IMG/VR virus record: IMGVR_UViG_3300045996_002337
Location: 124,001-188,000 of that record
DNA length: 64,000 bases
Direction: 5' to 3' (one strand)
Shown here in pieces: positions 42,281 to 59,235 of this stretch; positions within the stretch are counted from its first letter, which is position 1, and every line of letters begins with the position of its first letter. The notes below the pieces were generated by a model. The model made no database searches. It was given only the letters and a program-made list of their open reading frames with translations, and was not told where the DNA came from. The position numbers and the translations under genes are program-made.

Positions 42281-42283
42281 ACC

Positions 42284-42919
42284 ATGGCCATCAAAAATTC
42301 TGGTCCGCTAAGCTTAACAGAAATTCAGGCAGAGTACGGTGGTTCTGCGCCTATCTCGCTGAGTGAGTACTACTCTGGTGGCGGGCAGGTTCCTTCGCCG
42401 GCCCCAACAAGCGCCTATCAAATCGGTGGGGCGATTCCTACCTCAGGCGCGATCCGAATGGGCAGCTTCTACGGTACATCGAAAATTACGAACTTCGTCG
42501 TCGGACGATATGCGATGGCAGTGGATAGAATTACGCACTATCGCGTAGATCCAAATGGTGAGATTGGCGTTGTTGCGTCTACAAGTTGGAACACAAACAT
42601 TTGGAACCAAATCATACGGCTCCCCGCGGTTTCTTTCGCGGGTGGTACAGCTTCGGCTTTTTCATATCCCGCAATGGGTGAACGTTTGCCAGGGGCCATT
42701 ACCATAGTGCATCAACCAACCCAGGCTCAACCGTACATTGAATTTGTTGTAAACGATGATGGCCCACCTGGCGCCTCGCAGTTGATAGTGCAAGTCACAA
42801 TTAACGGAGTTGTCGGTGGACCCCTGTACACGGGCCCATTCAGGGGTGGAATGCAGGGAAATCAACCATCTGTTTATGGAATTTTCGCGTCTGATGAAAC
42901 GCCACCAGCGCCGTTCTAA
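42284..42919 (+). CDS. Tail fibre-associated protein
   Basis: SGPLSLTEIQAEYGG..PISLSEYY motif typically follows S74 fibres. Confidence 0.6.
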   Translation: MAIKNSGPLSLTEIQAEYGGSAPISLSEYYSGGGQVPSPAPTSAYQIGGAIPTSGAIRMGSFYGTSKITNFVVGRYAMAVDRITHYRVDPNGEIGVVASTSWNTNIWNQIIRLPAVSFAGGTASAFSYPAMGERLPGAITIVHQPTQAQPYIEFVVNDDGPPGASQLIVQVTINGVVGGPLYTGPFRGGMQGNQPSVYGIFASDETPPAPF

Positions 42920-42920
42920 T

Positions 42921-42949
42921 AACAAAGGGCTCCTTAGGAGCCCTTTGTT
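42921..42949. terminator. Bidirectional terminator between convergent genes
   Basis: aacaaagggctcc-tta-ggagccctttgtt. Confidence 0.85.
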
Positions 42950-42963
42950 TTATTGGTGAACTT

Positions 42964-43320
42964 TCACGACATTCCTTCTTTGATTTCGAAGGTGATGCCC
43001 CACCCGTATTCTGTTTCGACATCCGCGAGATAGAATTCATTCTCGATCGTGTCGAAGAACTTCTTCAGGTTTTCACTATCGAGTGTGATCGTCCAGTCAA
43101 GAAAATCATTCCGCTTGTACTTTCCACCCGCTGTCTTTGCGCTGTTTCTCACGACGCGATTGAACTGACGCTCCTCGCGACTGTCAACTGATGGATAATC
43201 AGAGTAGTAGCCCTTCAGAGTGATGGGACCCGAAAATGAACCAATTTTCTCTGCAGTTTTGGCGCTGTTCACTTCAACCGATTTTCCAGCGGCTTCATTC
43301 AACAGTTCATTAATCTTCAT
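42964..43320 (-). CDS. Putative internal head protein
   Basis: MKINELLNE N-terminus resembles a capsid-targeting propeptide. Confidence 0.5.
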   Translation of the reverse strand: MKINELLNEAAGKSVEVNSAKTAEKIGSFSGPITLKGYYSDYPSVDSREERQFNRVVRNSAKTAGGKYKRNDFLDWTITLDSENLKKFFDTIENEFYLADVETEYGWGITFEIKEGMS

Positions 43321-44213
43321 TTGTATTGCTCCAGTTCAGGCGGAACTTCCAGCCCTTGTTCTTTTAGGTCGTCCATCGTGTTCTTGAAGATGGTCGATGC
43401 GTCTTTTCGTTTCCGAATGATATTTACGATCTGCTCAACTGACATCACGTCCTTTGCCTTCACACCTTTCCCAAACATCAGCGAGGCAGCTTGATCTGGG
43501 TCGGTGATTGGGTCTGAGCTTGGATCAAACTTGTGATCCAGCCCCATTCTTTTTAGCTCAGCAGAAACTTCTTCAGCTGTTGCCTTGGCAAGGTTCTTGG
43601 TTCGTCCCTTGCCATCCTTGCGCATTGGACGCACCTTAAAGAGTCGCTCAAGCCCAACGTCTGCCTTGAAGGAGCGTCGAACCCGAATCACTGGCTCTCC
43701 ATCCTCAGGGTCCTTGACCTCTAGGTCCTTGCCAGGTTCGAAGATCTGCTTCATCATGTTCACGAAGAGCAGGGACCGAACGGCACCTTTGTACTTAGAA
43801 TCGGGTGCTGAGTGAAATGAGAATTTCGCCCACTTCTTTGAGGGGACAAACATCAGGTCAACTTGTACCTTCCGATCACCGGGGACCGGGACTGCAAAGG
43901 AGAAAACACCAGCACCGGCTCGGTGAATTTCGTCCGTGCCAGTTGCGTCGAGCATCTTCTGAATCACTGCCTCACGATCTACTGAACCTTCCTCAACCGC
44001 GATGTCAATGTCACCGGAGTCCTGTTGCTTTCCAGCAAGGGTCTTCTCAGTGGACCCAATAAGACTGGTTTTGATCTCATCGAGATCCAGCCCAGCATGC
44101 TTCGCCACAAATTTGAGCGCCGACTTGATATCATTCGCGCTCGCCCGGGTCGTGCCCATGTGGGCGGTAGATTTACCGCTGGACTTAGCCTCGAAAAGCT
44201 GTTTCAACTTCAT
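43317..44213 (-). CDS. Pol-beta superfamily nucleotidyltransferase
   Basis: LIGS...SGDIDIAV...VQVDLM; MKLKQLFE N-terminus; CTAAATA upstream. Confidence 0.75.
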   Translation of the reverse strand: MKLKQLFEAKSSGKSTAHMGTTRASANDIKSALKFVAKHAGLDLDEIKTSLIGSTEKTLAGKQQDSGDIDIAVEEGSVDREAVIQKMLDATGTDEIHRAGAGVFSFAVPVPGDRKVQVDLMFVPSKKWAKFSFHSAPDSKYKGAVRSLLFVNMMKQIFEPGKDLEVKDPEDGEPVIRVRRSFKADVGLERLFKVRPMRKDGKGRTKNLAKATAEEVSAELKRMGLDHKFDPSSDPITDPDQAASLMFGKGVKAKDVMSVEQIVNIIRKRKDASTIFKNTMDDLKEQGLEVPPELEQYK

Positions 44214-44251
44214 ATGTCTATTTTAACCTTAGGCAAAATTTTGTACACCTC

Positions 44252-44283
44252 TATTTAGAGAACCTGGCCGCTAACCATAAATA
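44252..44283. promoter_or_regulatory. Divergent late promoters (minus CTAAATA 44252-44258; plus CATAAATA 44276-44283)
   Basis: T4-late-like boxes on both strands. Confidence 0.55.
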
Positions 44284-44313
44284 CAGCACGACATCCCTGG
44301 AAGTAAAAAGACC

Positions 44314-46272
44314 ATGCTTATTGATCGCCCACAAATTGTAGAAAACTCCACTATCGTAAACACGACAGTAGCTTCAGGAACAGCCTTCCCCGCCCAACCA
44401 TCAGCCGGCGAGCTGTTCTACTTGACAACAGGTGAAGTAGGACTTTACTCGTACAGCGGCACGGTTTGGCTTCTTTCTGCCACGAACGCGGCCCTGACTG
44501 CCCACATTGCAGATGAGACAAAGCACCTTTCGGCTGCGCAGAACACTCTCCTTGACGGGGTAACAGTCACCAGTGCTGAACTCAACACGATTCCAGCCCT
44601 AACTACTCGTGTAACTGATGTCGAAACAGATCTTGACGGCCATATAACCAATCAAGCGGTTCACCTTACAGCAGCGCAGAACACGCTTCTTGACGGGCTC
44701 TCGGCGTCTCTAACCGCAGCCGAGTTGAACCATGTAGTTGGCGTAACCTCGCCGATCCAAGCTCAGCTTAACGCAATTGTCCAGGTGAATAACCAACAGG
44801 GCACTGACATCATTGACCTGCAAGATGCAGCATCCGGTGGAGCGGCCGCTGTGCAGGAAGAGCTCGACACCCACGTTGCCGACCAGACTGTTCACTTGAC
44901 CGCAGCACAGAACACCTTTCTAGATGGCGTTACAGTCACGGCCGCAGAAGTGAACTTTCTTTCAGGTGTCACTTCATCCGTTCAGACGCAACTTACGACA
45001 ACCGCAGGTGCCGTGGCTGGGTTGGGAACGAGCAAGCTAAGCGTCGACGGCACAAACGCAATGGCAGCAAATCTAAATGCTGGCAACTTTCGAATCATCA
45101 ACCTTGCAGCTCCTACGGCGCAAACTGACGCGGTCACCAAAGAGTACGTGGACAACTTTGTTCAAGGCCTGCACTGGGTTGGTTCAGCAAGGGCAGCAAC
45201 AACCGCGAACATCACGCTATCCGGTCTTCAGACTGTCGACGGCGTGGTGCTTGCAGTTGCAGATCGCGTGCTCGTCAAGGACCAGACGACTACATCACAG
45301 AACGGTGTGTGGCTTGCGGCGGCTGGAGCTTGGTCTCGCGCCACCGACTACAACACGACTGTAGAGGTTTCAAACTCAGCAGTGTTCGTTCTAGAGGGCA
45401 CTGTCAATTTGAAATCTACATGGGTACAGACATCGACATCTCCGGTAATTGGAACTGACCCGATCGTTTTTACCGCCTTCTCGGGACCAACGATCAACAC
45501 CGCAGGGGCGGGTGTTCAGTTCATTTCCACCGGTCACGTTGCCCTAGATCTTTATACTGGCGGCGGGCTCATGCTCACGTCAAACGGCACCGCTGCTGAT
45601 GCGAGCAACCCAGATTCTAAGTTGGCCCTCACAAACATCGGAACTGCGGGCACATATCGCTCAGTGACAGTCGATGCAAAGGGGCGAGTTAGCGCTGGGA
45701 CAAACCCGACGACAATTGCCGGTTACGGCTTGACTGACGCTGTTTCAAAAGCGGGCGACACCATGACCGGCCCGCTCGCTGTTAATGGACGTGTTTCAAT
45801 CACGAACACGACTGGCACACAGTATCTGCTCATGGGTAACCAAGATGCTGGAGGTCTCAACAAACCAGGCATGGTGGTTGCCACCGATGGTAGCATCCGA
45901 ATTGGACAAGGCACTTCATGGACAGGCAACGGTGGAACCTTCACAGCTGGGTTGTCTGTTACCAACGGAGTCGTAACAGACAGCTCTGGAAATGAGCTTG
46001 GCTGGAAGAACATTCCGCCAGTCGGAGCATGGACGGCTGGAGCGTGCTTCGTAACCACGACAAACCAGAACATTGACACAACCCCAGCTGGCACTGTCTA
46101 TTCGATCTATAACAACTCAGCGGTGTCGATCACAATTACGCCTATCAGCGGCGTGGTTCTTTACCTTGGTGGTACGGCCTCTGTCGGCGTGCGTACTCTT
46201 CTTCCGCATGGCTACGCCACGATTTGGTTTAGAACGACGGGTGAAGCTGTGATCAACGGGAACGTAACGTGA
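44314..46272 (+). CDS. Fibre/structural protein with three HLxAAQNTxLDG repeats
   Basis: Repeats, DAVTKEYVD, and LSGLQTVDGV and GTYRSVT modules shared with genes at 4.9-11.8 kb. Confidence 0.7.
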   Translation: MLIDRPQIVENSTIVNTTVASGTAFPAQPSAGELFYLTTGEVGLYSYSGTVWLLSATNAALTAHIADETKHLSAAQNTLLDGVTVTSAELNTIPALTTRVTDVETDLDGHITNQAVHLTAAQNTLLDGLSASLTAAELNHVVGVTSPIQAQLNAIVQVNNQQGTDIIDLQDAASGGAAAVQEELDTHVADQTVHLTAAQNTFLDGVTVTAAEVNFLSGVTSSVQTQLTTTAGAVAGLGTSKLSVDGTNAMAANLNAGNFRIINLAAPTAQTDAVTKEYVDNFVQGLHWVGSARAATTANITLSGLQTVDGVVLAVADRVLVKDQTTTSQNGVWLAAAGAWSRATDYNTTVEVSNSAVFVLEGTVNLKSTWVQTSTSPVIGTDPIVFTAFSGPTINTAGAGVQFISTGHVALDLYTGGGLMLTSNGTAADASNPDSKLALTNIGTAGTYRSVTVDAKGRVSAGTNPTTIAGYGLTDAVSKAGDTMTGPLAVNGRVSITNTTGTQYLLMGNQDAGGLNKPGMVVATDGSIRIGQGTSWTGNGGTFTAGLSVTNGVVTDSSGNELGWKNIPPVGAWTAGACFVTTTNQNIDTTPAGTVYSIYNNSAVSITITPISGVVLYLGGTASVGVRTLLPHGYATIWFRTTGEAVINGNVT

Positions 46273-47060
46273 TTCGATCGCAAGTTTACAGCAAGCAGCA
46301 CATGGGCCTTGGGCTCAGTGACGGTTCTTCAGCGGCTAACGCTGGCGGGTCCGCGCTTCAAATCAAGCAACGTACAGGCACCACCACAAATGGCCTGTAC
46401 TGGATCAAGCCGCCAAATGGACCTGCGGAGCAGGTGTGGTGTGACATGAACACGGCTGGTGGTGGATGGATTTTGATTGCGCGAACTCACCCTTCGTTCT
46501 CTCCAACGATGGGAACCTTTGGTTGGAACTCGTCAACGCTGATTGGTGGAGCCACTACATTCGGCGCCGGTTATCACCTAGGTCTAAAGCGCTTGACTGA
46601 TGCAGGTTTTTTATTCAACTCGTTCATTTATGGCAATCAACGAGACATCGTAAGCAACGAATGGGGTCCTTTCGTTTATCAGGTTGGGATTTATACGCCG
46701 ATTTCATTCATGGGAAACATAGATCCACCCGAGCGCTTAAACGAACGGTCGACGGTCAAAATGGATTTGAACGTGTATGGGAGCTCTGCATTTCCTCCCA
46801 TGCAGCAATACATGAGTCCTAGAGAAACGACAACAACGAATGAGAATTTATTCAACATGCGAGATGTTACCCCATCATCGGGATATGGTATTTCCCCAGT
46901 TGGCATGTTAACAGGTTACTGTAATTCTGCGGGGGTGCCATGGTATGCAGGCGCATTCTGCAATGGGGCGACCTTAAGCGGCAATGACTGGGTGCAGGGT
47001 GGGTCCTCATTAGTTACGAACATGGGCGGTACGAGTCAAGTGATGCTCATGGTCCGGTAA
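46269..47060 (+). CDS. Fibrinogen-like (FReD/lectin) domain protein
   Basis: NGLYWIKP...QVWCDMNTAGGGWILIAR. Confidence 0.75.
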   Translation: MIRSQVYSKQHMGLGLSDGSSAANAGGSALQIKQRTGTTTNGLYWIKPPNGPAEQVWCDMNTAGGGWILIARTHPSFSPTMGTFGWNSSTLIGGATTFGAGYHLGLKRLTDAGFLFNSFIYGNQRDIVSNEWGPFVYQVGIYTPISFMGNIDPPERLNERSTVKMDLNVYGSSAFPPMQQYMSPRETTTTNENLFNMRDVTPSSGYGISPVGMLTGYCNSAGVPWYAGAFCNGATLSGNDWVQGGSSLVTNMGGTSQVMLMVR

Positions 47061-47063
47061 CGG

Positions 47064-47089
47064 AAAAGGGTTCCTCACGGAACCCTTTT
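47064..47089. terminator. Bidirectional terminator
   Basis: aaaagggttcc-tcac-ggaaccctttt. Confidence 0.85.
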
Positions 47090-47129
47090 TCTTATTTGTC
47101 AACTAATGCTATAATTGTTGCGCGCTGTG

Positions 47130-48620
47130 TTATGACAGTGTCACAGCATGACCCCAAAGCCCATCGATGTGATCTACGACAGCTACTGCGTCGTCCTCAT
47201 CGAGCGTGCGGCCAAGATACGGCTTGTACTTCAGGACAAGAGCGCGGTCGTCCTTAGGCGTTCCGATACCAGTAACCGCGATCTGCGGAACGTAGTTGAT
47301 TCGCTCCATGGACCGAGCCAGAGAATTACGGAGGTTTTGGTATCCCACATCGTCGTGAATCTCACTTACGAATGCGCTCGGATCTTCTTCTTCCTCGTCA
47401 TCTGGGTAATTCACCTTGACCGAGAACATCTTCATGTCTCGGATGACCTTCGGTGAAAGATACTGCGCCACGAAGCTGTCGTCGCGGTGCTCAAACGCTG
47501 CTTCCTTGACGGCATCCTGCCAACGCTTTCCAATTAGCTGGGGGAACCATTCACGGTCCTCATCCGTTGGATTTTCGCAGATGCGTTTCACGTCCATGAG
47601 AATGTTAAAGCCGAGGGCATACGGGTTAATGCCGCTGTACCAGCGCTTCGTGTACTCAGGTTGATAGATGACACCGCTGTGGTAGTTCAAGAACGAAATG
47701 AAGGCGTCAGGTGAAAGGAACCCCTTCTCCTCCAACCGGGTCATGATGTAGTAGTGTGTGAAGGTTGCAAAGCCTTCGTTCAGGTTCTTCGTCTGCCCCT
47801 GCGGGTAGAAGTATTGATTCACCTTGTACACGATCCGAAGAATTTCACGCTTCCACTGGGGCAGAGTAGACGAGTTCTTCATGATAAAGTAGAGAAGATT
47901 CTCTTCTTCCTCGATCTGGTCATCCTCATCATGATCAGAAAGGTCAACTTCCTTGAAGCTTGTTTTCTTCAAGATGATGTCCAGCTCACGCTGCTTAGCC
48001 TCTTCATCATCGAGCAGCTTCTTCAGTCGAGATTCCTCGCTCAACTTGGGCTGGTGCTTCCGCTTGAACTTGTCAACGCCGTGAGGGGCAATCGCGTGGG
48101 CAGCATCAAGAACTTCCTCGACCTCTTCCTCACCGTACCGGTCTTCGCATTGACGAATGTAATCGCGCGCGAAGATCATGTAGTCAACGATGGAGCCTGC
48201 ATTTGTCCACTGCTTGAAGCACTCGTTGTTCTTGAACACAGCGTTATGGCCGATGGCCGCGTGCGCAATCACCATCGTCTGCATGAGCATGTCGTTTTCC
48301 TCCATGAGGTACGAAATGCACGGGTTCGTGTTGATCACGATTTCATATGCAAGGCCTTGGTGGCCTTTCTCATAAGCGCGCGAGCTCTTGAGAAAGTCCT
48401 TACCAAAGGACCAGTGGTTGTAGTGGATCGGAAGACCGATTGAGCTGTACGCATCGAGCATCTGCTCAGCGGAGATGATTTCGATGGAGTTAGGGTAGAA
48501 GTCCACGCCGGGCTTCAGTTCCATCTCCTCCTCTGCAATCTTCTCAATCTCCTTATACATCCTCGCAATCAGATCTGGGGTCCAATCGGTACGTGATGTG
48601 ACATAGAGCGGTTCAGTCAT
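47130..48620 (-). CDS. ycgB: SpoVR/YcgB family protein
   Basis: GLPIHYNHWSFGK, LAYEIVIN, AHAAIGH, YFYPQGQTK..NEGFA, NPYALGF. Confidence 0.93.
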   Translation of the reverse strand: MTEPLYVTSRTDWTPDLIARMYKEIEKIAEEEMELKPGVDFYPNSIEIISAEQMLDAYSSIGLPIHYNHWSFGKDFLKSSRAYEKGHQGLAYEIVINTNPCISYLMEENDMLMQTMVIAHAAIGHNAVFKNNECFKQWTNAGSIVDYMIFARDYIRQCEDRYGEEEVEEVLDAAHAIAPHGVDKFKRKHQPKLSEESRLKKLLDDEEAKQRELDIILKKTSFKEVDLSDHDEDDQIEEEENLLYFIMKNSSTLPQWKREILRIVYKVNQYFYPQGQTKNLNEGFATFTHYYIMTRLEEKGFLSPDAFISFLNYHSGVIYQPEYTKRWYSGINPYALGFNILMDVKRICENPTDEDREWFPQLIGKRWQDAVKEAAFEHRDDSFVAQYLSPKVIRDMKMFSVKVNYPDDEEEEDPSAFVSEIHDDVGYQNLRNSLARSMERINYVPQIAVTGIGTPKDDRALVLKYKPYLGRTLDEDDAVAVVDHIDGLWGHAVTLS

Positions 48621-49978
48621 TTCTTACCTTTCTTCTTTCCATACAGCGACTTGAAGGCATCGAATACCTGCGCCTCATCAGCAATTTTAACACAAGCCAG
48701 CTTACGGTTAGTGTTAGAAATTGACATCATGACGTTCCACAGAGTGGGTGAACCGCCAAACGAAGCTGCAAAGTTTTGACCGACTTGAACATACACGGCA
48801 TGTCGCACCTTTGCGAGGAGGCCCTTAGTTTCAATTTCATCAATCACGTTTGCGTTATCATTGTCCCAGTTGTCACCGTCACCAGCATACGACAGGTAAA
48901 TGTTTGTCTGATTCGCATCATACCGTGACTTGATGATGTCATGCATCATTGCCCAGGCTGGTGAGACCGTCGTGCCACCACTCAAGCGCGTGGTGAAAAA
49001 CTCCTCTTCAGAGAGCTCGTGCGGCTCGTCAGTGTGAGCGATGAAGATCAGGTCAGTCGTCGGGTACTTACGCTTAATGAAGGCGTACTGTAGAGAGAAG
49101 AACTTGCGCGCCATCCGCTTCTTATCTTCATCCATCGACCCTGAAACGTCCATGATCATGCCAAGCACGGCGTCTGACGCCTTTACTTGAACCTTCTCAG
49201 ATTTACGGTAACGAAGATCAACATCCTCAAAAATCGGCATTGACGAGACCTTCTGCTTCAGCTCAGCGATGCGCAGCGCAACTTCCTGAACGCGAAGTGC
49301 CCATGCATCTACGCCTGCCTCATGCTCATGATCGTCGGCCATGAGCTCAGCCAGCTCAGCCTCAAGCTCAGCAAGTTCATCACGTGAGTCCTTTGTAAGA
49401 GCCAGTCGCCGCGCCTTTGAGTGCTTGAAGGACCGAATTACTGAAAGTTGCCCTGGGTTGCCGACCTTTTGGAAGCCTGCCCGTTGCATCTTGAATTCTG
49501 GCAGGTCCTTCTCGTGCGTTTCCTTCAGGTCTGGTAGTTCGCAGTCCTCAAAGAACACGTCAAAGAACTCAGAGCGCGAGATGTTGACGATGAAGTCATC
49601 TTCACCTTCTTCACCAGGGCCATTGCCGTTTCCACGACCACCTGATCCTCCGCTAGGGTTGATTGGAAATTCATCTCCCTTCAGCCAGTGATCGTTGCCA
49701 ATCAGGACGATTTCGCGCTCACCAATGTTTGGGTCGTAATGAAATGTCGGTTCGCTCAATGCGTGCCGCGCAACTTTAACCGGGTTCGTGTAGTTGCCGG
49801 CCCCCTGAGGGCCACCGGCTTTGCCCACGCCGCCAGCATCGATGTCTTCAGGCTTCGCATTCTTAATCGAATCCTTGACGCGCTTCAGCAACTTCTGTCG
49901 GTTATTCAGCGACTTTCCACGACCAGTCTTACGTCGATCGACGAAGATAAAGGTCGTGGAGGTAGGAGTGGTAGCCAT
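48617..49978 (-). CDS. yeaH: YeaH/YhbH (UPF0229) vWA protein
   Basis: KSLNNRQK, LSEPTF, MDVSGSM, SGGT, GDGDNW. Confidence 0.92.
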   Translation of the reverse strand: MATTPTSTTFIFVDRRKTGRGKSLNNRQKLLKRVKDSIKNAKPEDIDAGGVGKAGGPQGAGNYTNPVKVARHALSEPTFHYDPNIGEREIVLIGNDHWLKGDEFPINPSGGSGGRGNGNGPGEEGEDDFIVNISRSEFFDVFFEDCELPDLKETHEKDLPEFKMQRAGFQKVGNPGQLSVIRSFKHSKARRLALTKDSRDELAELEAELAELMADDHEHEAGVDAWALRVQEVALRIAELKQKVSSMPIFEDVDLRYRKSEKVQVKASDAVLGMIMDVSGSMDEDKKRMARKFFSLQYAFIKRKYPTTDLIFIAHTDEPHELSEEEFFTTRLSGGTTVSPAWAMMHDIIKSRYDANQTNIYLSYAGDGDNWDNDNANVIDEIETKGLLAKVRHAVYVQVGQNFAASFGGSPTLWNVMMSISNTNRKLACVKIADEAQVFDAFKSLYGKKKGKK

Positions 49979-49998: not shown

Positions 49999-51963
49999 TT
50001 ACGACGACTTACGGTTGTTGGAAAACCAATTGACCAAGATTTGAACTTGGTGTGGGGTGTAACCCTTTTCAACCATACGCTCAACAAAACCGCGGTGCTT
50101 CTCTTCGGTTTCCTTGTCTTGCTTTGGACCGAAGGCAATCACTGGCATGATTTGCTCAGTGGCAGCGAACATGCGCTTTTCGATGACCGTCTTGATCTTT
50201 TCGTACTGGTCCCAGCGAGGCGACTTGCCTTCGTTCTTCGCCTTGTGACGGAGAACATAGTGCACGATGTCATTGCGGAAGTCCTTCGCGTTTGTAATCG
50301 CGGCGGCCTTTTCAATTTCCTCAAGCTTCTGATTCAGCGTGTCGCGGTTGAGAAGCTGATGTGTTTCGGGATCACGGGTCTGTTCATCATCGATCCATGC
50401 TGCAGCGAACTGAACATAACGTTCGAACATGTTCTGACCGAACGAGCTGTACGACTCAAGGTAGGCGGTGCGCAGTTCTTTCTCGAGGAACTCGAAATAG
50501 CGCGGTTGCAGGTGCGACTTGATGAAGTCAACGTAGCGCGTGAACTTCTCTTCAGGGAGAGCCTCCTTCTTGATCGCCTCTTCGATGACATACATCAGGT
50601 CGATCGGGTTCGCTTGGAACTCCTCTGGACGAAGGTCAAAGACCGACGACAGAACCTTGAAGGCAAAACGGGTCGACATGCCGTTCATTCCTTCATCAAC
50701 GCCAGCTGCATCGCGATACTCTTCGTACGGCTTGGCGTTCGGCATCGTGTCCTTAACGTTCTCGCCGTTGTACACACGAAGCTTGGCGTAGATCGTCGAG
50801 TTTTCCGGTTCCTTGAGACGCGTCAGAATCATCCACTGCGCAAGCATCTTCAACGTGCCGGGGGCGATCGGTGCCTTGCTGAGGCTGGAGCCGCTCAGCA
50901 TCTTCTCGTAGATCTTGATCTCCTCGTTCACGCGCAGGCAGTACGGCACATCAACGATAAAGACGCGGTCCAAGAAAGCTTCGTTCGTCTTGTTGTTCTT
51001 GAACGCGAACCATTCAGATTCGTTCGAGTGGGCGCAGATGATGCCGGTGTAAGGCATCGCGGGGATGGCTTCCGTGCCGTTGTAGTTGTGTTCTTGCGTT
51101 GCCATCAGGAGCGGGTTAAGCGTCTTGATGTTCGCCTTGAACATTTCAGCGAAGTCCATCAGGCCTTGGTTCGTGCGGTTCAAGCCACCGCTGTACGAGT
51201 ACGAGTACGGGTGATTCTGCGGGAACTTCTCCAGCTTGCGCAGGTCTGTCTTGCCGATCAGGACCGAAACGTCTTGGTTGTTCTCATCGCCTGGCTCGAC
51301 CTTCATGACGCCGATTTGGCGATCCTTATTAGGCCACAGCTTTACGACCGAGAAGCGGGTGATGTCGCCACCGAATTCCTGCAGCTTTTGCTGAGCCCAG
51401 CCAGAGAGAACAGTTTGGCCGATCAGGTTGCGCGGAATGCCGATTTCATTGACGAGCGCCATGTGATCTGCATCGTACTTGTCGAACAGGCCGAGCGGGC
51501 TTTCAAAGACTGGCGAGGTGGCCAGCTCAGGGTCCTTTTCGCTTGCATCGTGCAGCACGTAGATGGGGTGCTTCTCCATCAGCGATTTCAGGCGTTCGAC
51601 GAGTGAGGACTTACCACCACCGACTGGACCCTTGAGGTACAGGATCTGCTTGGATTCTTCCAGGCCGGCCGACGCGTGGCGGAAGTAGGCGGCAATGCGT
51701 TCGATGGTGTCTTCCATGCCGTGGAAGTCGTCGAAGCCTTGGTAAAGGCGGACCTTCTTGTTCGAGTGAATGCGCGAAAGGCGCGGATCCTCAGAGGTGT
51801 CAACGATGCGTGCATCGCCAATTGCTGCAACCATGCGCTCTGCAGCGGTTGCGTAGGCCATCTGGTCCGTCTTGCAGAGGTCCAGATATTGATCGAGGGT
51901 TAGAACCTCGGGCTTGGAAAACTTCTTCTCGAAAGAAGCCTTGAGAGATGACAAGGTGCTCAT
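49999..51963 (-). CDS. prkA: PrkA/YeaG AAA+ ATPase/serine kinase
   Basis: LEESKQILYLKGPVGGGKSS, EPGDENNQD, NQGLMDFAEMFK, AHSNESEW, PYCLR. Confidence 0.95.
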   Translation of the reverse strand: MSTLSSLKASFEKKFSKPEVLTLDQYLDLCKTDQMAYATAAERMVAAIGDARIVDTSEDPRLSRIHSNKKVRLYQGFDDFHGMEDTIERIAAYFRHASAGLEESKQILYLKGPVGGGKSSLVERLKSLMEKHPIYVLHDASEKDPELATSPVFESPLGLFDKYDADHMALVNEIGIPRNLIGQTVLSGWAQQKLQEFGGDITRFSVVKLWPNKDRQIGVMKVEPGDENNQDVSVLIGKTDLRKLEKFPQNHPYSYSYSGGLNRTNQGLMDFAEMFKANIKTLNPLLMATQEHNYNGTEAIPAMPYTGIICAHSNESEWFAFKNNKTNEAFLDRVFIVDVPYCLRVNEEIKIYEKMLSGSSLSKAPIAPGTLKMLAQWMILTRLKEPENSTIYAKLRVYNGENVKDTMPNAKPYEEYRDAAGVDEGMNGMSTRFAFKVLSSVFDLRPEEFQANPIDLMYVIEEAIKKEALPEEKFTRYVDFIKSHLQPRYFEFLEKELRTAYLESYSSFGQNMFERYVQFAAAWIDDEQTRDPETHQLLNRDTLNQKLEEIEKAAAITNAKDFRNDIVHYVLRHKAKNEGKSPRWDQYEKIKTVIEKRMFAATEQIMPVIAFGPKQDKETEEKHRGFVERMVEKGYTPHQVQILVNWFSNNRKSS

Positions 51964-52007
51964 TAGAATCCCCTTTAAAAATGGGTTGACGAGTCTGCTA
52001 TTTGCGG

Positions 52008-52014
52008 TATTTAG
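52008..52014 (-). promoter_or_regulatory. Late-type promoter CTAAATA upstream of prkA
   Basis: Same box at 44252 and 62813. Confidence 0.45.
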
Positions 52015-52031
52015 AGAGTAATGGAAAGCGT

Positions 52032-52451
52032 TTAGGTTTGCTCGCCCTCCGAAACATGGTCAAGATGGAACATTTGTCCATGAACGACGGCGCTCGTTTC
52101 AATGACGAGGTTGCGGTAAAGAATTTTCTTCGCGATCAACTTGGCGCCAGCCTTGACCGCAAGAGTACCCTCAACTCGAATTACATCACACACGAGGTTG
52201 CCGGTGATGATGACGTTTGTGACAGTGACGTCTAGCGCCCGGTCAAAAGATGGAGCACTCAGCTTGCCATTGACAACCAGGGTGGTTTTAGTATCCACCT
52301 TACCATCCTCGGCAGGGATCGTTGAGATAACCTGCGCTGCGACTTCTCCGTCGATAACGAAGGTGCCGTTACGGGCGAGCGTGATGTCACCAGTAATTTT
52401 GGTACCAGCGCCAATCAGCGAATCAAAACCGCGGGGGCGAAAAATGCTCAT
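52032..52451 (-). CDS. Bactofilin (polymer-forming cytoskeletal protein)
   Basis: SLIGAGTKITGDI...IDGEV...V.GNL....EG.L......L....VI...AVVHGQM beta-solenoid. Confidence 0.8.
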   Translation of the reverse strand: MSIFRPRGFDSLIGAGTKITGDITLARNGTFVIDGEVAAQVISTIPAEDGKVDTKTTLVVNGKLSAPSFDRALDVTVTNVIITGNLVCDVIRVEGTLAVKAGAKLIAKKILYRNLVIETSAVVHGQMFHLDHVSEGEQT

Positions 52452-53011
52452 CGTGCTCTCTTCAAAGTAATAAACGTAAAGTGGATGCCGTCATCAGTTT
52501 GTTGACGGTCGCTCATTTCGGTAAGATACCATTTTACACCAATTTTCGCCTGTTGGAGGACAAATAGCTTCCAGGCGCTCAGGTCGAAGGGCAAAATAAC
52601 ATCGCCACCAGAGTTTTCATCGACGAGTGTCAAGTAAATTTCATCGACCATCTTCAGCTCCAACGCCTGCGCATAGACGTTGGCGCCACCAATGAGCCAG
52701 ACATCTGGTGCGGTGCGCCCAAGGCATGCCTGTGATGCCTGAACCCAATCGAAACTGGAGATGATGTCGATCTTGTCACCTGACTTCCCGCGAATTTCAC
52801 CGTAAGGTTTCCGAGTCATCACGATGTTTCGACGGTTTGGGAGACCATTTGGTCTCCCGAGAGATTCGAAGGTGTTCCATCCCATGACAACTGTGCCGCC
52901 AGTCGTGAGCTCCTTGAACCGTGCCATGTCCCCGGGAATCTTCCACGGCAGACGACCATCTTTCCAACCAATCGCGTTGCCGCGATCGACCGCCACGATC
53001 ATCTTCAGCAT
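52448..53011 (-). CDS. folA: Dihydrofolate reductase
   Basis: IVAVDRGNAIG...LPWKIPGDMARFKELT...VVMG..T.ESL..LPNRRNIV..IGGA. Confidence 0.95.
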   Translation of the reverse strand: MLKMIVAVDRGNAIGWKDGRLPWKIPGDMARFKELTTGGTVVMGWNTFESLGRPNGLPNRRNIVMTRKPYGEIRGKSGDKIDIISSFDWVQASQACLGRTAPDVWLIGGANVYAQALELKMVDEIYLTLVDENSGGDVILPFDLSAWKLFVLQQAKIGVKWYLTEMSDRQQTDDGIHFTFITLKRAR

Positions 53012-53268
53012 TCGATAAGCTCCTTTAGATTTTCAACCGGTGGGATGGGGCCACGTGAAAAACGGCTGTAGAAAAGATCAGTGCACGACTTTGGGCCGAT
53101 GTAATCATAGTTGACGTAGTAGTCTGGTACTGGAAGTTCTCGATCTTTCATCGCTTCCATGCTATATTTCAGCGCCTCAGCTTCAGTTCTGAACGTCAAG
53201 TATCCGCTGATTCTTGAACCCCAGCCCCGCTCATATTCAACACGCTCTATAACGTAAACAATCTTCAC
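53005..53268 (-). CDS. Hypothetical protein
   Basis: 87 aa coupled ORF. Confidence 0.55.
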   Translation of the reverse strand: MKIVYVIERVEYERGWGSRISGYLTFRTEAEALKYSMEAMKDRELPVPDYYVNYDYIGPKSCTDLFYSRFSRGPIPPVENLKELIEC

Positions 53269-53942
53269 GGTTGTTCCAATGTTTCCTGCTTTGGCTCATA
53301 TGCGTTCATGATGTGCTCAATCAGCTGCAATTGGTTGATCAGTTGCAACTTGATGTTCTCGAACACGCCTTCTTGGTCAGGGAACCGACGACGGGCAAGC
53401 TTGATACGGTGCAGGAACTCTTCGACGGTTTCTTTGATGTAGCGCTCAAGGCGAGCTGGCTTGAACACACCAAACATCGTTGCAACGTTGTTTGCGCGGT
53501 CACCCGCTTTCACGACCGCGGTGTCTTCATCCGCGAAGATGGTATCAAGGCTGTAATCTGGGTTCTTGATGCCCATGATTTCCTTAGACAGCTTGCGAAC
53601 TTTTTCGGCGATCTGATCACCCCAAAGCTGCGAAACTTCTTCAAGCGAGACGTAGTGCTTTTGCTTCGTTTCTTTATCAGTGCGCGGGTCTTCAACTGCG
53701 TCGTGAAGGAACACGAGGATATAAACCGTCACCGGGTTGCGGATGTGCCGGTGCAAGGTGCGAAGGTCGTGAAAGATGCTCAACTGGTGGATGAACTCCG
53801 GTTCACCGCCGTTGCGCAGTCCGTCGTGGTGGGCTGCGCCATATTCCATGGCTTCGAGGACCTTGAAATAACGGTGATCAGACTCCGCCATTCCAAGAAG
53901 CCAGTAGCGGGCGGCGATCATCAGCTTTTCGTATTTGGTCAT
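53265..53942 (-). CDS. HD-domain (p)ppGpp hydrolase-like protein (SpoT/Mesh1-type)
   Basis: AHHDGLR.GGEPEFIH...LHDAVED...VKAGDRANN. Confidence 0.75.
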   Translation of the reverse strand: MTKYEKLMIAARYWLLGMAESDHRYFKVLEAMEYGAAHHDGLRNGGEPEFIHQLSIFHDLRTLHRHIRNPVTVYILVFLHDAVEDPRTDKETKQKHYVSLEEVSQLWGDQIAEKVRKLSKEIMGIKNPDYSLDTIFADEDTAVVKAGDRANNVATMFGVFKPARLERYIKETVEEFLHRIKLARRRFPDQEGVFENIKLQLINQLQLIEHIMNAYEPKQETLEQP

Positions 53943-53968
53943 AAGTTTATTATAACACAAAAGCGCGA

Positions 53969-54763
53969 TTAGCCCTGAACGATTGGCGCACCTTTAAACA
54001 GCGCCGCTACACCATCAGGTTGCTTAGACAGCCAGATGTCAAGCTGATCGATAAATGATCGTTCGACAGGTCCAGTTGGCCGGTGCTTTTCCGGAATCTT
54101 CGCGAGTTGATCTTCAGTCAGCATGCGTTCTTCGCGAACCCGGCGAGCGAACGTGCCGCGCTTGAAGAAATACGGATAGTCGTTGAAGTTGATCCCCACC
54201 TTGAAAAGCATCTCCTGCATCTCAGGTCCGCTCTTGTGCTGCAGTTCCTTGTGCGAGAACATAGATTGGGCCGCCATGGAGATGGCGTTCTTCGTTGCAT
54301 CCTGCTGGCGCCAAAGCACGCAGTTGTAGGCCTCAACGAGGTTAGGAACCACGAAGGCCCGAGCATCGAAGATTGGAAGCTGATCGGCCTTCTCAGGCAG
54401 GTGGAACTCGAGCTGCTTGTTGAAGTACGCGGTGGCGTAGGAAGCGCACAGCGACTCCATCTTCTGGATGCGCCCGTTGAACGGGTAGTCAGCGCTGGAG
54501 AACGAGTCCTCGTAGAAAACGAGGGTGATTTCATCCGACTGAGTGTAACCAACGATGGAACCCATGCGGTCAACCAGCGCCTTCATCGTCTCCACCATGA
54601 GGGCGCTCAGCCGTGTATCATATGGCCGCTTGAGCCCCTTGGTGAAGGTGTGAAAGGACTTGCCATCCAGTCGCACGATCAGCGGTTGTCCCTTGAATGC
54701 TTTTCGCGAGGTCGTAACGGCCTCGTAAGATTTCATCCGATCACCTAGGTCGTCCATGCTCAT
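53969..54763 (-). CDS. thg1: tRNA(His) guanylyltransferase Thg1-like 3'-5' polymerase
   Basis: RMKSYE, RLDGKSFH, YTQSDEI, FDARAF, WRQQDA.KNAIS. Confidence 0.92.
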   Translation of the reverse strand: MSMDDLGDRMKSYEAVTTSRKAFKGQPLIVRLDGKSFHTFTKGLKRPYDTRLSALMVETMKALVDRMGSIVGYTQSDEITLVFYEDSFSSADYPFNGRIQKMESLCASYATAYFNKQLEFHLPEKADQLPIFDARAFVVPNLVEAYNCVLWRQQDATKNAISMAAQSMFSHKELQHKSGPEMQEMLFKVGINFNDYPYFFKRGTFARRVREERMLTEDQLAKIPEKHRPTGPVERSFIDQLDIWLSKQPDGVAALFKGAPIVQG

Positions 54764-55005
54764 TTCTCCACTCCACATTTAATGCCCACTGCGGCGATTC
54801 CGGCAGTGCCATTCCATTCATTTCTGATTTTTGGGGCCAATCCACCACCTTCAGATACTAGGTAAACGTAGCCGTCGTAGCAAACTTCATTAAGATTGAT
54901 AACAGGCCTGGCAGCCGCCACCTTTGTTACCAGGTGCGCATCTTCATTTTTCTGACCACACGCCACTAGCATCAGAGCTGCAACCACAGAAATTACGCGT
55001 TTCAT
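54760..55005 (-). CDS. Putative lipoprotein
   Basis: MKRVISVVAALMLVAC. Confidence 0.6.
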   Translation of the reverse strand: MKRVISVVAALMLVACGQKNEDAHLVTKVAAARPVINLNEVCYDGYVYLVSEGGGLAPKIRNEWNGTAGIAAVGIKCGVEK

Positions 55006-55499
55006 GATTTCACTTGCTTGATAAGTTGAACCAACTCCATGATCAACCACACCTTTGGTGCAAACCAGACCAAGAGAAATTCCTTGAGGTGGGCCATCGT
55101 GATGATGAAACCCACAGTCATTCCGAGAAGGCCCGTGGCTACTGCAAAAATTCGTTGGCCGGCCCACTGATCAGCGAAATCGTTCTCGGCATTTTGCACG
55201 TTCTTGAAGCCGTATCGATAGGCAATCATAAAGAACCCGATGAAGAACGCAAGACCAAGAAGAATCAGCCCAGTGTTGTAAGCGCGACCGAAGGCCACGT
55301 ACTGGAAGGCGATTTCAGGGATTTCCTGCGCAACGGCTTTGCCACCTTCGACAGCGAAGTCGGTTGCCTTCGAGACGGCAGACCCGACTGAAGCAAAGAT
55401 AGCATCGGCCCGACCGAGGAGCTCAGCCTGCATTGGGGAGAGACCCGAAGCCGGGGCAGAGGCGGCAACAGCCGCGGCGGCAGCTACGTCAGACATCAC
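55002..55499 (-). CDS. Membrane protein
   Basis: 2-3 TM helices. Confidence 0.6.
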   Translation of the reverse strand: MMSDVAAAAAVAASAPASGLSPMQAELLGRADAIFASVGSAVSKATDFAVEGGKAVAQEIPEIAFQYVAFGRAYNTGLILLGLAFFIGFFMIAYRYGFKNVQNAENDFADQWAGQRIFAVATGLLGMTVGFIITMAHLKEFLLVWFAPKVWLIMELVQLIKQVKS

Positions 55500-56394: not shown

Positions 56395-56665
56395 TTGCGG
56401 CTCTCTTTGCGGCTCGTTTTTCCATGATCGGGCCTTCGAGGTTATCAGCCACGAAGTCGGCGAAGGAGTGTAGAAGCTTGCGCGTAGCTTCTGGACCCAT
56501 CATTTCCGTGCCGCACGACCACTTCTCATGATTGTAGTGAAAGGACAGCTGTCCAAAACCGCAGCCCTTCCAACTCCAATCAAAGTAAGCACTGGCTGAA
56601 TGCACACCCTCGCAGGTAGGAGGGTTGTCCTTCATTGATGCAGAAAATAGGTCATTGATAAACAT
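56372..56665 (-). CDS. Hypothetical protein
   Basis: About 97 aa. Confidence 0.5.
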   Translation of the reverse strand: MFINDLFSASMKDNPPTCEGVHSASAYFDWSWKGCGFGQLSFHYNHEKWSCGTEMMGPEATRKLLHSFADFVADNLEGPIMEKRAAKRAANEETEKR

Positions 56666-57206
56666 TCCAATCAAAAGTTGAACCAAAAACGGGTGGCGTG
56701 CCAGCTCTCAAATCATCTCGAGCGCGCATCAGCATGTGTCCAAGCCAATTCGTTCCTCGCCACTGCGACTTGTCAAAGATTCGCTCATCTAGATGCTCCA
56801 AACCGACACCCCATTTCGTGTCGAGCGGTGAAGCTTCTACGATGATTTTATCACATGTCGAGAGCAAAAGATCACGCTCTTTAGCGTTCTGTTCAAATTT
56901 CGCGTAGACGCCTGGATACGTTAAATCGCGGGCGGCGCCGTCCCATACTGCGTCCGAGTAACCTTGAATTGAACGGCCAATGGCTTTCTGTTTGCGAGGA
57001 TCTGAAGTTGCCATAACACGCGTCGCGGCGTCTGCATCCTTAAACAGATCAGCCTTGACGCGCATCATGTATTGCTCTGACGTGTTGTACCGCTCAAAAG
57101 CACCGTCAATCTCAGCTTGCGCGGTAAATCCGATCTTCGCCCAATTGGAGAGGATGCCGCCCCAAAAGTAGACGCCAGTCTCGGTTTCAAGTTCCCATGT
57201 TTTCAT
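56652..57206 (-). CDS. NADAR (YbiA-like) hydrolase
   Basis: LSNW, SEQYMM..KA.LF.D, PRKQKAIGR, AKFEQN, EASPLD..WGVG, NWLG..LM. Confidence 0.92.
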   Translation of the reverse strand: MKTWELETETGVYFWGGILSNWAKIGFTAQAEIDGAFERYNTSEQYMMRVKADLFKDADAATRVMATSDPRKQKAIGRSIQGYSDAVWDGAARDLTYPGVYAKFEQNAKERDLLLSTCDKIIVEASPLDTKWGVGLEHLDERIFDKSQWRGTNWLGHMLMRARDDLRAGTPPVFGSTFDWNVYQ

Positions 57207-57224
57207 CTTTTCTTTCTCTTTCAA

Positions 57225-57248
57225 GAAGAGGCTCCTAGGAGCCTCTTC
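57225..57248. terminator. Hairpin downstream of Ro60
   Basis: gaagaggctc(c)/(g)gagcctcttc. Confidence 0.55.
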
Positions 57249-57252
57249 ACCT

Positions 57253-58881
57253 TTACAGGTTGGCGATGATCTGCGGTGCAGCTGAGTCGAAGCCTGCAAT
57301 GTCCAGCATCCCACCGTCCTTCGGATCAGCGATCGTGAATTCCGATACCGAGGTACCGATCACGATGGACTTCGCGAAGACGCCCGCCTTCTGACGGTAC
57401 TTCTTCAGTGCCTGCACTGGGGCTTGGCCGCCGGCGTAGGTTTCATTGTCCGTGATGATGACGAACTTGTCGACCGGGATGTTGTGCGCCGTAGCGTACT
57501 CGAAGGTCTTCGCGCAATCGGTTGAACCACCGGACCAGTGCATGTCACGCATTGCCTTGAGCGCTGCGTCGAGGCGCATCGTCGGGCTGATCATCAGCGG
57601 CTCGATGTTGTGCTTGAAGCCAACGATGAAGTGGTTCGGCTGGTTACGAACTGCTGCCATCGCCATCACTGCCGCAACTTCCGCTGCATAGAGGTTCGGC
57701 GAACCGTTGACCGTTGCCCCCGTCATCGAACCAGAGATGTCCACACCGACCATGTAGTTCTCGTCAGTGGTCTTCGACGTTGCGAAGGCTGCGTAGAACG
57801 CGTCATCGAGAGCCGACACGATCTTCTGGTCCGGAGACCAGGTCATCGAGCCACGTTCGCCATGACCAGCCGAGTACTGCTTCATCGCCTGCAGGATCGT
57901 GATCGGGTGAACACGACCGCGCTTCAGCGCTTCGGTATCGAGGAGCTTCGACACGACCAGCTTCGAGCCTTCCGACATCGGAGCAATCACGCCGTGAGAC
58001 GTCAGAGCACCGAGCTTACGGATCAGAGCCGTCATGCCCATGTTACGCGCGAGCGCGAACAGAACATCCTTGTCCTTCAGGAACTGCGTTGGCACCATTT
58101 CCCACGTGAGCAGGTCAGAGCCTTCGATCAGCTTGAGAACGGTCTTCTTGTCGTCAGCACGCTTCAGGTACTCGAAGTCAACGAGGACTTGCGGAACAGC
58201 GGCACCTTCTGGCAGCTCGCCCTTCACGGAGTAACGGAAGAGGTTCGATTGGATTTCAGACGATGGCTTGACGTGCGCCAGACGCAGAACGTCACGGTGC
58301 GCCCAGCCATTACGCTGCTGGTACTTCAGGAGCTGAACTGCCAGCTTGTCGACCGTCTTCGTGGTGTACCATGCGGCAACGCCACGCTTTGCAGCTGCGT
58401 TCCACTTGCCCAGCGAGTCGAGGATCGAGACGAACAGGAACAGCCACGTACCCGTACGAGCGACCTTTGGAAGGGCTTCGTACGCAGCTGCAACAGTCTG
58501 TGGGTCGCCGTAGACAGCAGCAATGGCCAGGGCTACAACGGCTGGGTCGTTCTTCGGTGCACGGCCCGCCAGCGAGTACTCGACGACGCGAGCAACCACA
58601 CGGAGACCATCTTCCTTCAGACACTTCTTGACGGTGTCGAACGACTTCGCGGTCGTTTCCTTCGCACCGACGTAGTAACCAGCTGATTCAGAACCGATCA
58701 TGAGGAAGCGGTCAAGCACGCCCCAATGGTCCATCGTGAACGTGAAGCCGCCCGCGTTGTTCAGCTTCATGTCAGCTTCGCGGCCAGGAATTGGCTGAGT
58801 CTGTGGCGTCGACACCTTGGCGGTGACCTTTGCCTTCGTGGAAGTCGAGGACGCGTGGTTCGTGTAGTTCGAAGATGACAT
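57253..58881 (-). CDS. rsr: Ro60/TROVE RNA-binding protein with vWA domain
   Basis: NNAGG, LDRFL.IGSE..YY, RTGT.LF.F, KYQQRNGW.HRD.LR..H, LIRKLG, DISGSM, TDNET, AGFD. Confidence 0.95.
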   Translation of the reverse strand: MSSSNYTNHASSTSTKAKVTAKVSTPQTQPIPGREADMKLNNAGGFTFTMDHWGVLDRFLMIGSESAGYYVGAKETTAKSFDTVKKCLKEDGLRVVARVVEYSLAGRAPKNDPAVVALAIAAVYGDPQTVAAAYEALPKVARTGTWLFLFVSILDSLGKWNAAAKRGVAAWYTTKTVDKLAVQLLKYQQRNGWAHRDVLRLAHVKPSSEIQSNLFRYSVKGELPEGAAVPQVLVDFEYLKRADDKKTVLKLIEGSDLLTWEMVPTQFLKDKDVLFALARNMGMTALIRKLGALTSHGVIAPMSEGSKLVVSKLLDTEALKRGRVHPITILQAMKQYSAGHGERGSMTWSPDQKIVSALDDAFYAAFATSKTTDENYMVGVDISGSMTGATVNGSPNLYAAEVAAVMAMAAVRNQPNHFIVGFKHNIEPLMISPTMRLDAALKAMRDMHWSGGSTDCAKTFEYATAHNIPVDKFVIITDNETYAGGQAPVQALKKYRQKAGVFAKSIVIGTSVSEFTIADPKDGGMLDIAGFDSAAPQIIANL

Positions 58882-58925
58882 GGTATTTCCTTTCAACGTT
58901 ACGGCTGCGCATGCAGCAAAAGAGA

Positions 58926-59235
58926 TCAACTCACTGACAAACAAAAGATGCAATTGGAACTTCAGGCCTCACTCTACGCTCAAAATTCCTTACGGCATGA
59001 GTTTCGAGTGCTCCCTACATCGGGCTTATTTCTGGGTGCGCCGATGACCTGCAAGGTTACGGTCCTTGAACAACAGCGAATTTTCGGATCGCTGCAATCT
59101 TATCCATCGTATCGCATGATGGCGGGCGTCTGATTTTCAGGCTTCTCTTTCAACTCGCGAAGAAAGATCAGATTCTCGGATTACAGAGTCACATGTAGTG
59201 GATAACCAATACGCGACGGTTTGTCAGTGGGTTGA
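58926..59235 (-). ncRNA. Candidate structured ncRNA (Ro60-associated) in the rsr leader
   Basis: 16/17-bp terminal helix plus nested helices; no credible ORF over most of it. Confidence 0.5.

Follow-up and report, generated by a model that had tools for sequence, protein, structure and literature searches.

A predicted, divergent bactofilin encoded in front of the PrkA cassette in a clade of jumbo phages

Bactofilins are regarded as a cellular protein family, bacterial and archaeal, and the cytoskeletons known from phages are tubulin- or actin-like. In bacteria, YeaG, YeaH, and YcgB function in a single pathway; their cofitness is conserved, and they are linked to nitrogen and amino-acid starvation (bioRxiv 10.1101/072470). 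Bacillus subtilis PrkA has been reported to be an ATP-dependent Lon-like protease whose substrates are unknown, and YeaG to be a casein-phosphorylating kinase (PMC9512850). The B. subtilis prkA gene is flanked by yhbF and yhbH (PMC9512850), and yhbF encodes the bactofilin BacF (PMC13649987). Here, we describe an open reading frame (ORF) at positions 52032 to 52451, minus strand, of a 64,000-nucleotide (nt) stretch of viral DNA (referred to below as the window), which comprises bases 124001 to 188000 of the single 349,660-bp IMG/VR virus record IMGVR_UViG_3300045996_002337. By sequence and predicted structure, this ORF encodes a divergent bactofilin, and it lies directly in front of a phage-borne PrkA cassette.

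The closest systems with which the cassette can be compared are the proteobacterial YeaG/PrkA-YeaH-YcgB operon and the copy of it carried by the Ralstonia jumbo phage RsoM2USA (343.8 kb), the nearest deposited phage by protein identity (48% for topoisomerase II and 52.6% for PrkA). The three cassette genes in the window are full-length, orthologue-grade, and in the usual order. No bactofilin precedes these genes in the cellular operons or in RsoM2USA; its addition is peculiar to a single PrkA clade of phages.

Sequence, predicted fold, and family of the phage protein

The ORF runs from ATG to TAA over 139 codons, and its boundaries are exact. Its parts, all on the minus strand, are as follows.

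52032..52451, minus: bactofilin coding sequence, 139 amino acids plus TAA (ORF, PF04519, fold match to 6rib and 2n3d)
52428..52451, minus: MSIFRPRG, residues 1 to 8, cationic and hydrophobic peptide resembling a membrane-targeting sequence (MTS) (family consensus M[ST][IL]FRSRGFD)
52065..52427, minus: predicted beta-helical core, residues 9 to 129, with two insertions (model strands 11 to 129, gaps in the hhalign alignment)
52035..52064, minus: LDHVSEGEQT, residues 130 to 139, flexible acidic part of the tail (conservation, low predicted local distance difference test [pLDDT] values)

A first-pass annotation, made from the letters of this DNA alone, had read a bactofilin-type beta-solenoid here and had named assignment to a different beta-helix family as the outcome that would speak against it. 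The protein matched the Pfam family PF04519 (Bactofilin) with 32.2 bits, above the gathering cut-off of 27.9 (E value of 1.3e-7), over profile positions 1 to 97 of 98, and all 24 close homologues matched PF04519 and no other family. The margin is thin, because cellular bactofilins from 121 Pseudomonadota genomes score 65 to 96 bits and the phage proteins 26 to 32; identity between the phage protein and cellular bactofilins is ~25%. In an hhalign comparison, the profiles built from the phage family and from 16 canonical bactofilins aligned with a probability of 95.8% (E value of 8.3e-9) over 106 columns, across the whole domain. Searched against PDB sequences, the canonical profile recovered BacA (E value of 1.8e-26) and TtBac (E value of 1.7e-19). 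The phage profile alone found no bactofilin among PDB sequences; its best match was the C-terminal beta-helix of MinC, with an E value of 0.059. PHROGs, PADLOC, and NCBIfam held no match for the protein.

The predicted structure gave the same assignment. An AlphaFold2 model (pLDDT of 87.2, predicted template modelling score of 0.80) was searched with Foldseek, which placed Thermus thermophilus TtBac (6rib) at the top rank, weakly (E value of 0.012), and the model was then realigned structurally. It superposed on 6rib with a Z score of 14.7 and a root mean square deviation (rmsd) of 1.4 Å over 99 of 101 residues, on Caulobacter crescentus BacA (2n3d) with a Z score of 13.1 and an rmsd of 2.0 Å over 101 of 103 residues, and on 6ria with a Z score of 12.6. 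A scan of 48,161 PDB representatives that did not depend on Foldseek put the two bactofilins at ranks 1 and 2, followed by tapirin at 11.1 and by all other chains at 8.7 or less. Thus, the solenoid reading held, and the beta-helix family indicated by the model is that of the bactofilins.

The predicted phage protein shares with canonical bactofilins (BacA 2n3d, TtBac 6rib/6ria, PF04519/DUF583) a single-domain beta-helical core, modelled at an rmsd of 1.4 to 2.0 Å over ~100 residues, along with glycine and hydrophobic repeats, a first strand of the form xIDSLIG, a short hydrophobic and basic N-terminal peptide, and a hydrophobic residue at the position that aligns with the C-terminal polymerisation interface. 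It differs from them in being encoded by phages within a fixed cassette and in two core insertions (residues ~41 to 56 and 64 to 74).

At the N terminus, MSIFRPRG stands directly before the first core strand, FDSLIG; canonical cores open with xIDTLIG or xIDSLIG, sometimes straight after an MFSRKSK peptide. The bactofilin MTS reads MFSKQAKS in BacA and has the global consensus MFSKKKK; the hydrophobic residues at its N terminus are embedded in the bilayer, and the head groups of the lipids are contacted by two lysines (PMC12448750). Relative to that consensus, MSIFRPRG has I3/F4 and R5/R7 present, with the register shifted by one residue. Among 153 full-length family members, the segment before the core has a median length of 9 residues and carries on average 2.6 basic and 0.28 acidic residues, and its sequence grades from MSIFRSRG through MKNPFKRTG and MFNKKLK to MFSKKK, the last in distant members. 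Because the peptide grades into the canonical MFSKKK, the earlier suggestion that MSIFRPR resembles a membrane-targeting motif appears reasonable, and the peptide may be described as MTS-like.

Toward the C terminus, V123 (in SAVVHG) aligns with the interface phenylalanine of BacA (F130 in GAFFQG) and TtBac (F105 in GAVFVG). Mutating this phenylalanine in either protein abolishes polymerisation. The position is V, I, M, or L in the phage family and mostly Ile (GAxING) in canonical proteobacterial bactofilins, so that the residue aligned there in the phage proteins is typically Val, Ile, or Met, in contrast to the Phe of BacA and TtBac. As judged from the alignment, a hydrophobic residue at V123 would be compatible with end-on stacking and is not proof of it. 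Beyond the interface, the motif HLDHVSEGE consists of H129, the last core residue, and the flexible tail (pLDDT of 56 for the last block). H129, L130, D131, V133, S134, and E137 are invariant in 24 sequences, and the strict motif occurs in 56 of the 153 members, very distant ones included. Since canonical bactofilin tails are variable, and often Pro-rich, this short and highly conserved tail is a feature specific to the family.

A word search recovered 24 relatives with 43 to 61% identity, several of them on contigs of 57 to 375 kb. An exhaustive profile search over 1.84 billion representatives, clustered at 50% identity, identified 185 proteins at an E value of ≤1e-3, 98 at ≤1e-10, and 21 at ≤1e-30, nearly all of them 120 to 150 residues long. 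In the ESM Atlas, the protein adjoins a 104-member Bactofilin cluster that is 86% viral, and automatic IMG annotation labels some members 'CcmA (bactofilin family)'. The contigs that carry the gene span 27 to 62% GC content, which indicates a broad phage group. Other resources returned nothing: tblastn of the window protein against 50,697 phage records gave no match, PHROGs had no match for phage-type or canonical bactofilins, and exact-word pattern scans of IMG/VR and 185,579 species genomes gave no relative (the IMG/VR members were found later, via PrkA). A search of the accessible literature found no link between bactofilins and phage genomes or between bactofilins and PrkA. The family is apparently an undescribed, phage-only branch of the bactofilins.

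Gene order at the PrkA cassette

The genes flanking the bactofilin are listed here in the direction of reading.

52448..53011, minus: dihydrofolate reductase (DHFR) (PF00186, E value of 1.6e-34; stop codon overlaps the bactofilin start)
51964..52031, minus: bactofilin-PrkA spacer, 68 nt (-10-like element and GGGG Shine-Dalgarno sequence before the PrkA ATG)
49999..51963, minus: PrkA/YeaG AAA+ protein (kinase or Lon-like protease), 654 amino acids (PF08298, PF06798, PRK15455)
48617..49978, minus: YeaH/YhbH (DUF444), with a vWA-type DxSxS motif (DVSGS) (PF04285, E value of 8e-113)
47130..48620, minus: SpoVR/YcgB (PF04293, E value of 7.9e-139)

The bactofilin ATG overlaps the DHFR TGA as ATGA (52448 to 52451), and the PrkA start lies 68 nt downstream of the bactofilin, so the first-pass annotation had correctly placed the gene as coupled to DHFR and directly upstream of a prkA module. 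The window PrkA scored 975 bits against the YeaG equivalog model PRK15455 of NCBIfam (cut-off of 576).

We examined 14 genomic contexts, which ranged from members with 61% identity down to members at an E value of 1e-7 and included two without the tail. Bactofilin was followed by PrkA, DUF444, and SpoVR in 14 of 14, all on phage-like contigs, with a 342-residue ORF between bactofilin and PrkA in one. DHFR was directly upstream of the bactofilin in 11, separated from it by one small ORF in 2, and absent in 1. Insertions and losses of other genes were seen around the bactofilin-PrkA pair.

A second survey was anchored on PrkA: the best 80 of 378 IMG/VR stretches encoding it were taken, and their flanks were scanned with hidden Markov models. 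Thirty assessable loci had a PrkA at least 68% identical to the window protein; in 26 of these (22 of the 25 nonidentical ones), a bactofilin of the family was encoded on the PrkA strand, 21 to 275 nt upstream of PrkA. PrkA is 71 to 88% identical across the phage clade and still 55 to 58% identical to proteobacterial YeaG; the bactofilin beside it has diverged to the limit of detection, so these neighbours are under very different constraints. In the L118/L121 locus, a 199-residue ORF takes the place of the bactofilin between DHFR and PrkA, and in L120 DHFR abuts PrkA. We also considered gene 31 of RsoM2USA, upstream of its PrkA, as a counterpart of the bactofilin; it is unrelated (hhalign probability of 0.1%).

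Surrounding genes and source genome

The record is ~97% complete (CheckV) and encodes phage structural genes, a split topoisomerase II, a helicase, and similar functions, in agreement with the earlier reading of the bactofilin as phage-encoded. Megablast of the 8-kb region against the 50,697 phage records found no nucleotide-level relative. In the 64-kb window, we found no tRNA and no match to any Rfam family, Y-RNA included, at or above the gathering score. Seven percent of the words sampled from the phage were present in one wastewater DNA run. A 36.6-kb contig (L008, NZ_JAZQPV010000081.1), filed under an 'Acinetobacter sp.' metagenome-assembled genome, encodes a PrkA with 86% identity to that of the window and a bactofilin in front of it. 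The contig looks like a related jumbo-phage fragment binned with a bacterium; because it is phage-like and has 51% GC, we did not trust its label as a host call.

Upstream of DHFR, on the same strand, lies an island made up of an 87-residue ORF, an HD-domain protein, a Thg1-like tRNA-His guanylyltransferase, a NADAR protein, and a Ro60/TROVE-vWA protein. The HD-domain protein (53265 to 53960, minus strand, 231 residues, weak match to PF01966) has as its best NCBIfam match the hydrolase region of RelA/SpoT (E value of 2.8e-7, far below the cut-off), and related contigs carry a homologous ORF of 220 to 235 residues in the same place, between Thg1 and DHFR. Judged by these matches, it could be a small hydrolase of (p)ppGpp (guanosine tetra- or pentaphosphate), which would fit an island for takeover of the starvation response. 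The NADAR protein (56652 to 57314, minus strand) and the Ro60/TROVE protein with its vWA domain (57253 to 58953, minus strand) are both encoded upstream of Thg1, and in most related contigs a Ro60 gene is again present upstream of the cassette. Just upstream of Thg1, an ORF at 54760 to 55167 (minus strand) overlaps a predicted membrane protein at 55002 to 55499; read from an internal start, it gives MKRVISVVAALMLVACGQ..., typical of a lipoprotein signal peptide with a lipobox, and its product would then be a small phage lipoprotein.

On the other side, a tail-fibre-like block on the opposite strand (40562 to 47060, plus strand) abuts the SpoVR end of the cassette. It contains a 572-residue protein with a C-terminal Peptidase_S74 (endosialidase chaperone) domain, a 652-residue ORF without a family, and a 263-residue ORF with a weak fibrinogen-C match, and a strong bidirectional terminator-like hairpin (47062 to 47091) lies between block and cassette. 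Farther away in the window, proteins of 1,827 residues (4896 to 10379, minus strand) and 470 residues (10392 to 11804, minus strand) gave repeated matches to structural, head-decoration, and tail-fibre PHROGs and are likely to be large components of the virion. A single M23 peptidase domain occurs in the genome (G000:C1:78724-79035, in L087, outside the window), inside a 537-residue frame ~97 kb from the bactofilin. Enzymes of the M23 type are classic clients of bacterial bactofilins, but nothing connects this gene with the bactofilin gene here.

Proposed function and alternative explanations

The near-invariant adjacency of bactofilin and PrkA, kept through divergence and local insertions, suggests a joint role for the bactofilin and the PrkA cassette, and the position of the gene in an island of stress and RNA-repair genes points to takeover of host physiology and not to a PhuZ-like spindle. 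We put at roughly 50% the probability that the bactofilin, by analogy with its cellular relatives, is a membrane-associated scaffold for the phage PrkA cassette or a substrate or regulator within it. The jumbo phage would make the protein during infection, and, as cellular bactofilins do, it would assemble by end-on stacking into polymers that need no nucleotide. Displayed in arrays, the short cationic N-terminal peptide could anchor these polymers to the inner surface of the host membrane, where the polymer may serve as a localisation platform for the YeaG/PrkA-YeaH-YcgB/SpoVR proteins or as their substrate or regulator. Contact with the cassette may run through the acidic tail HLDHVSEGE that many members carry: Ser134-x-x-Glu137 is a possible site for an acidophilic, casein-phosphorylating kinase such as YeaG; equally well, the tail may mark the protein as a degron for degradation by a Lon-like protease, or it may be bound as an acidic ligand by the vWA site (DVSGS) of YeaH. 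In its most specific form, in which a large jumbo-phage clade, as yet uncultured, builds a bactofilin polymer on the host membrane as platform, phospho-acceptor, or degron substrate of its YeaG/PrkA-YeaH-YcgB proteins, the proposal is tentative, and we consider it doubtful that every part would hold. Co-folding of PrkA and the bactofilin, run with the PrkA alignment and the phage family profile, returned an ipSAE of 0.00 in each of two runs, where the mark is 0.32; this is evidence neither way.

Several observations weigh against a partnership with the cassette. The tight translational coupling of the bactofilin is to the gene upstream of it and not to PrkA. The spacer contains a -10-like element, CTAAATAC, at 52007 to 52014, and elements of this kind (TAAATA, TAAAATA, TAGAAT, or TATAAT) occur in 27 of 33 nonredundant homologous spacers, mostly 28 to 73 nt before the PrkA ATG, as opposed to 1.9% of same-length windows inside the PrkA coding sequence. 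Given this enrichment, the PrkA cassette probably has its own conserved promoter. (CTAAATAY was dropped as a candidate for a general promoter motif of the phage, as it occurs once in 64 kb, which chance predicts.) The acidic tail is absent from many members that still adjoin PrkA. Three distinct loci of the PrkA clade have no bactofilin (L118/L121, L120, and L114), and among 49 loci with a PrkA at 55 to 60% identity only one has a bactofilin, with DHFR in between. RsoM2USA and a 635-kb megaphage have the PrkA cassette and no bactofilin, and no bactofilin was found within 5 kb of PrkA in 50 cellular loci. None of the RNA runs searched with the sampled words of the phage gave a match. The gene order is partly inherited within a phage lineage, and conserved synteny is for that reason weaker evidence of function than it would be across bacteria.

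A parallel exists in B. subtilis, where the same order of bactofilin, prkA, and DUF444 gene is found at yhbE and yhbF, the genes for BacE and BacF (PMC9512850, PMC13649987). In the bacterium, as in the phages, the bactofilin gene is the last of its unit, and prkA appears to be served by a separate promoter; BacE and BacF differ from the phage protein in their chromosomal location, their greater length, and their reported role in flagellar assembly and motility. Within the searchable literature, bactofilin and PrkA are not mentioned together in any paper, and no functional link between them was found published for B. subtilis. The B. subtilis order supports a bactofilin-PrkA partnership as an independent parallel, but it may be a coincidence, since it was not seen in the 50 other cellular PrkA loci.

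Two alternatives place the bactofilin in a cytoskeletal role apart from the cassette. In one, the protein would form a phage cytoskeleton of its own, functionally analogous to PhuZ, by which the sites of replication or assembly are positioned, as the first-pass annotation had proposed. The part of that proposal that stood is that the filament, if there is one, would not be of the PhuZ type: no match to tubulin/FtsZ (PF00091) was found anywhere in the 349,660-bp genome, although 13 of 14 control genomes matched. PhuZ and TubZ (tubulins) and the phage actin-like proteins resemble the bactofilin as polymer-forming proteins encoded by jumbo phages, but their folds are unrelated and their polymers nucleotide-dependent, whereas a bactofilin polymer would, by analogy, be static, nonpolar, and nucleotide-independent. 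Because RsoM2USA, the nearest isolate, also has no tubulin and no shell (PMC8504454), another organiser could be useful in such large phages, and cellular bactofilins are reported to position ParABS in Myxococcus (PMC5703909). The role at replication or assembly sites, however, found no support: the gene sits in the stress and RNA-repair island and is not linked to replication, packaging, or morphogenesis genes, no ParB- or PadC-like partner was seen nearby, and RsoM2USA itself, like three members that have lost the gene, does without the bactofilin. Such an organiser, though in keeping with the predicted fold, is therefore unlikely. We consider quite unlikely an effector of host morphogenesis that would copolymerise with or cap the host bactofilin, or recruit cell-wall enzymes, and so stop division or reshape the cell during a long latent period. 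In many bacteria, peptidoglycan enzymes are scaffolded by bactofilins (PMC12448750), the phage protein keeps a hydrophobic residue where the end-on interface aligns, and 55 of the 121 sampled Pseudomonadota genomes encode a bactofilin. More than half of those genomes have none, though, the one M23 peptidase gene is distant (~97 kb), and the divergence from cellular bactofilins (~25% identity, 26 to 32 versus 65 to 96 bits) is large; nothing was found in favour of the hijacking of a host bactofilin that the earlier annotation had suggested, and copolymerisation is at most conceivable from the sequence.

The remaining alternatives detach the gene from any cytoskeleton. With DHFR directly preceding the bactofilin in 11 of the 14 contexts, an ATGA start/stop overlap here and in 8 of the 14, and a promoter-like element separating PrkA, the beta-helix might tether phage enzymes of deoxynucleoside triphosphate synthesis, and its adjacency to PrkA would then be only inherited. 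That partnership is distinctly improbable in our view. The bactofilin stays beside PrkA where DHFR is absent (L005), where small ORFs intervene (L083 and L088), and in several IMG/VR loci where DHFR is 0.2 to 2.4 kb away; thymidylate synthase is 12 kb away in the window, and we know of no bactofilin that binds a metabolic enzyme of the DHFR kind. Least probable of all, with very little in our estimate to recommend it, is a beta-helix that does not polymerise: a small structural protein of the virion or of the tail-fibre type, or else a soluble adaptor with its conserved tail capping the end of the helix. Phage fibres commonly contain beta-helices, the profile of canonical bactofilins gave a weak match to the phage tail-fibre protein 9cuy (E value of 6e-4), tapirin and adhesin beta-helices were the next structural matches (Z score of 11), and tail-fibre-like genes lie 5 to 11 kb away. 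Against this, the protein has only 139 residues and no structural PHROG match, it is encoded in a metabolic block on the strand opposite to the fibre genes, its cationic MTS-like N terminus is typical of cytoplasmic bactofilins, and bactofilins ranked clearly above other beta-helices in the structural search.

What is new here is a phage-borne bactofilin branch that comprises ~185 clusters (50% identity), has a signature tail motif, and keeps to one genomic location. A partnership with the PrkA cassette, if true, would give the first viral bactofilin cytoskeleton and the first known physical partner of this starvation pathway, and the yhbF(bacF)-prkA-yhbH arrangement of B. subtilis would reflect the same partnership. 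The biochemical role of the cassette, as kinase or as Lon-like protease, is disputed, and a small, easily expressed candidate partner would make that question testable. It would also be a reason to re-examine the bacF-prkA neighbourhood of B. subtilis. If the link proved to be inherited gene order only, the phage proteins would still represent a new ecological niche for a known fold.

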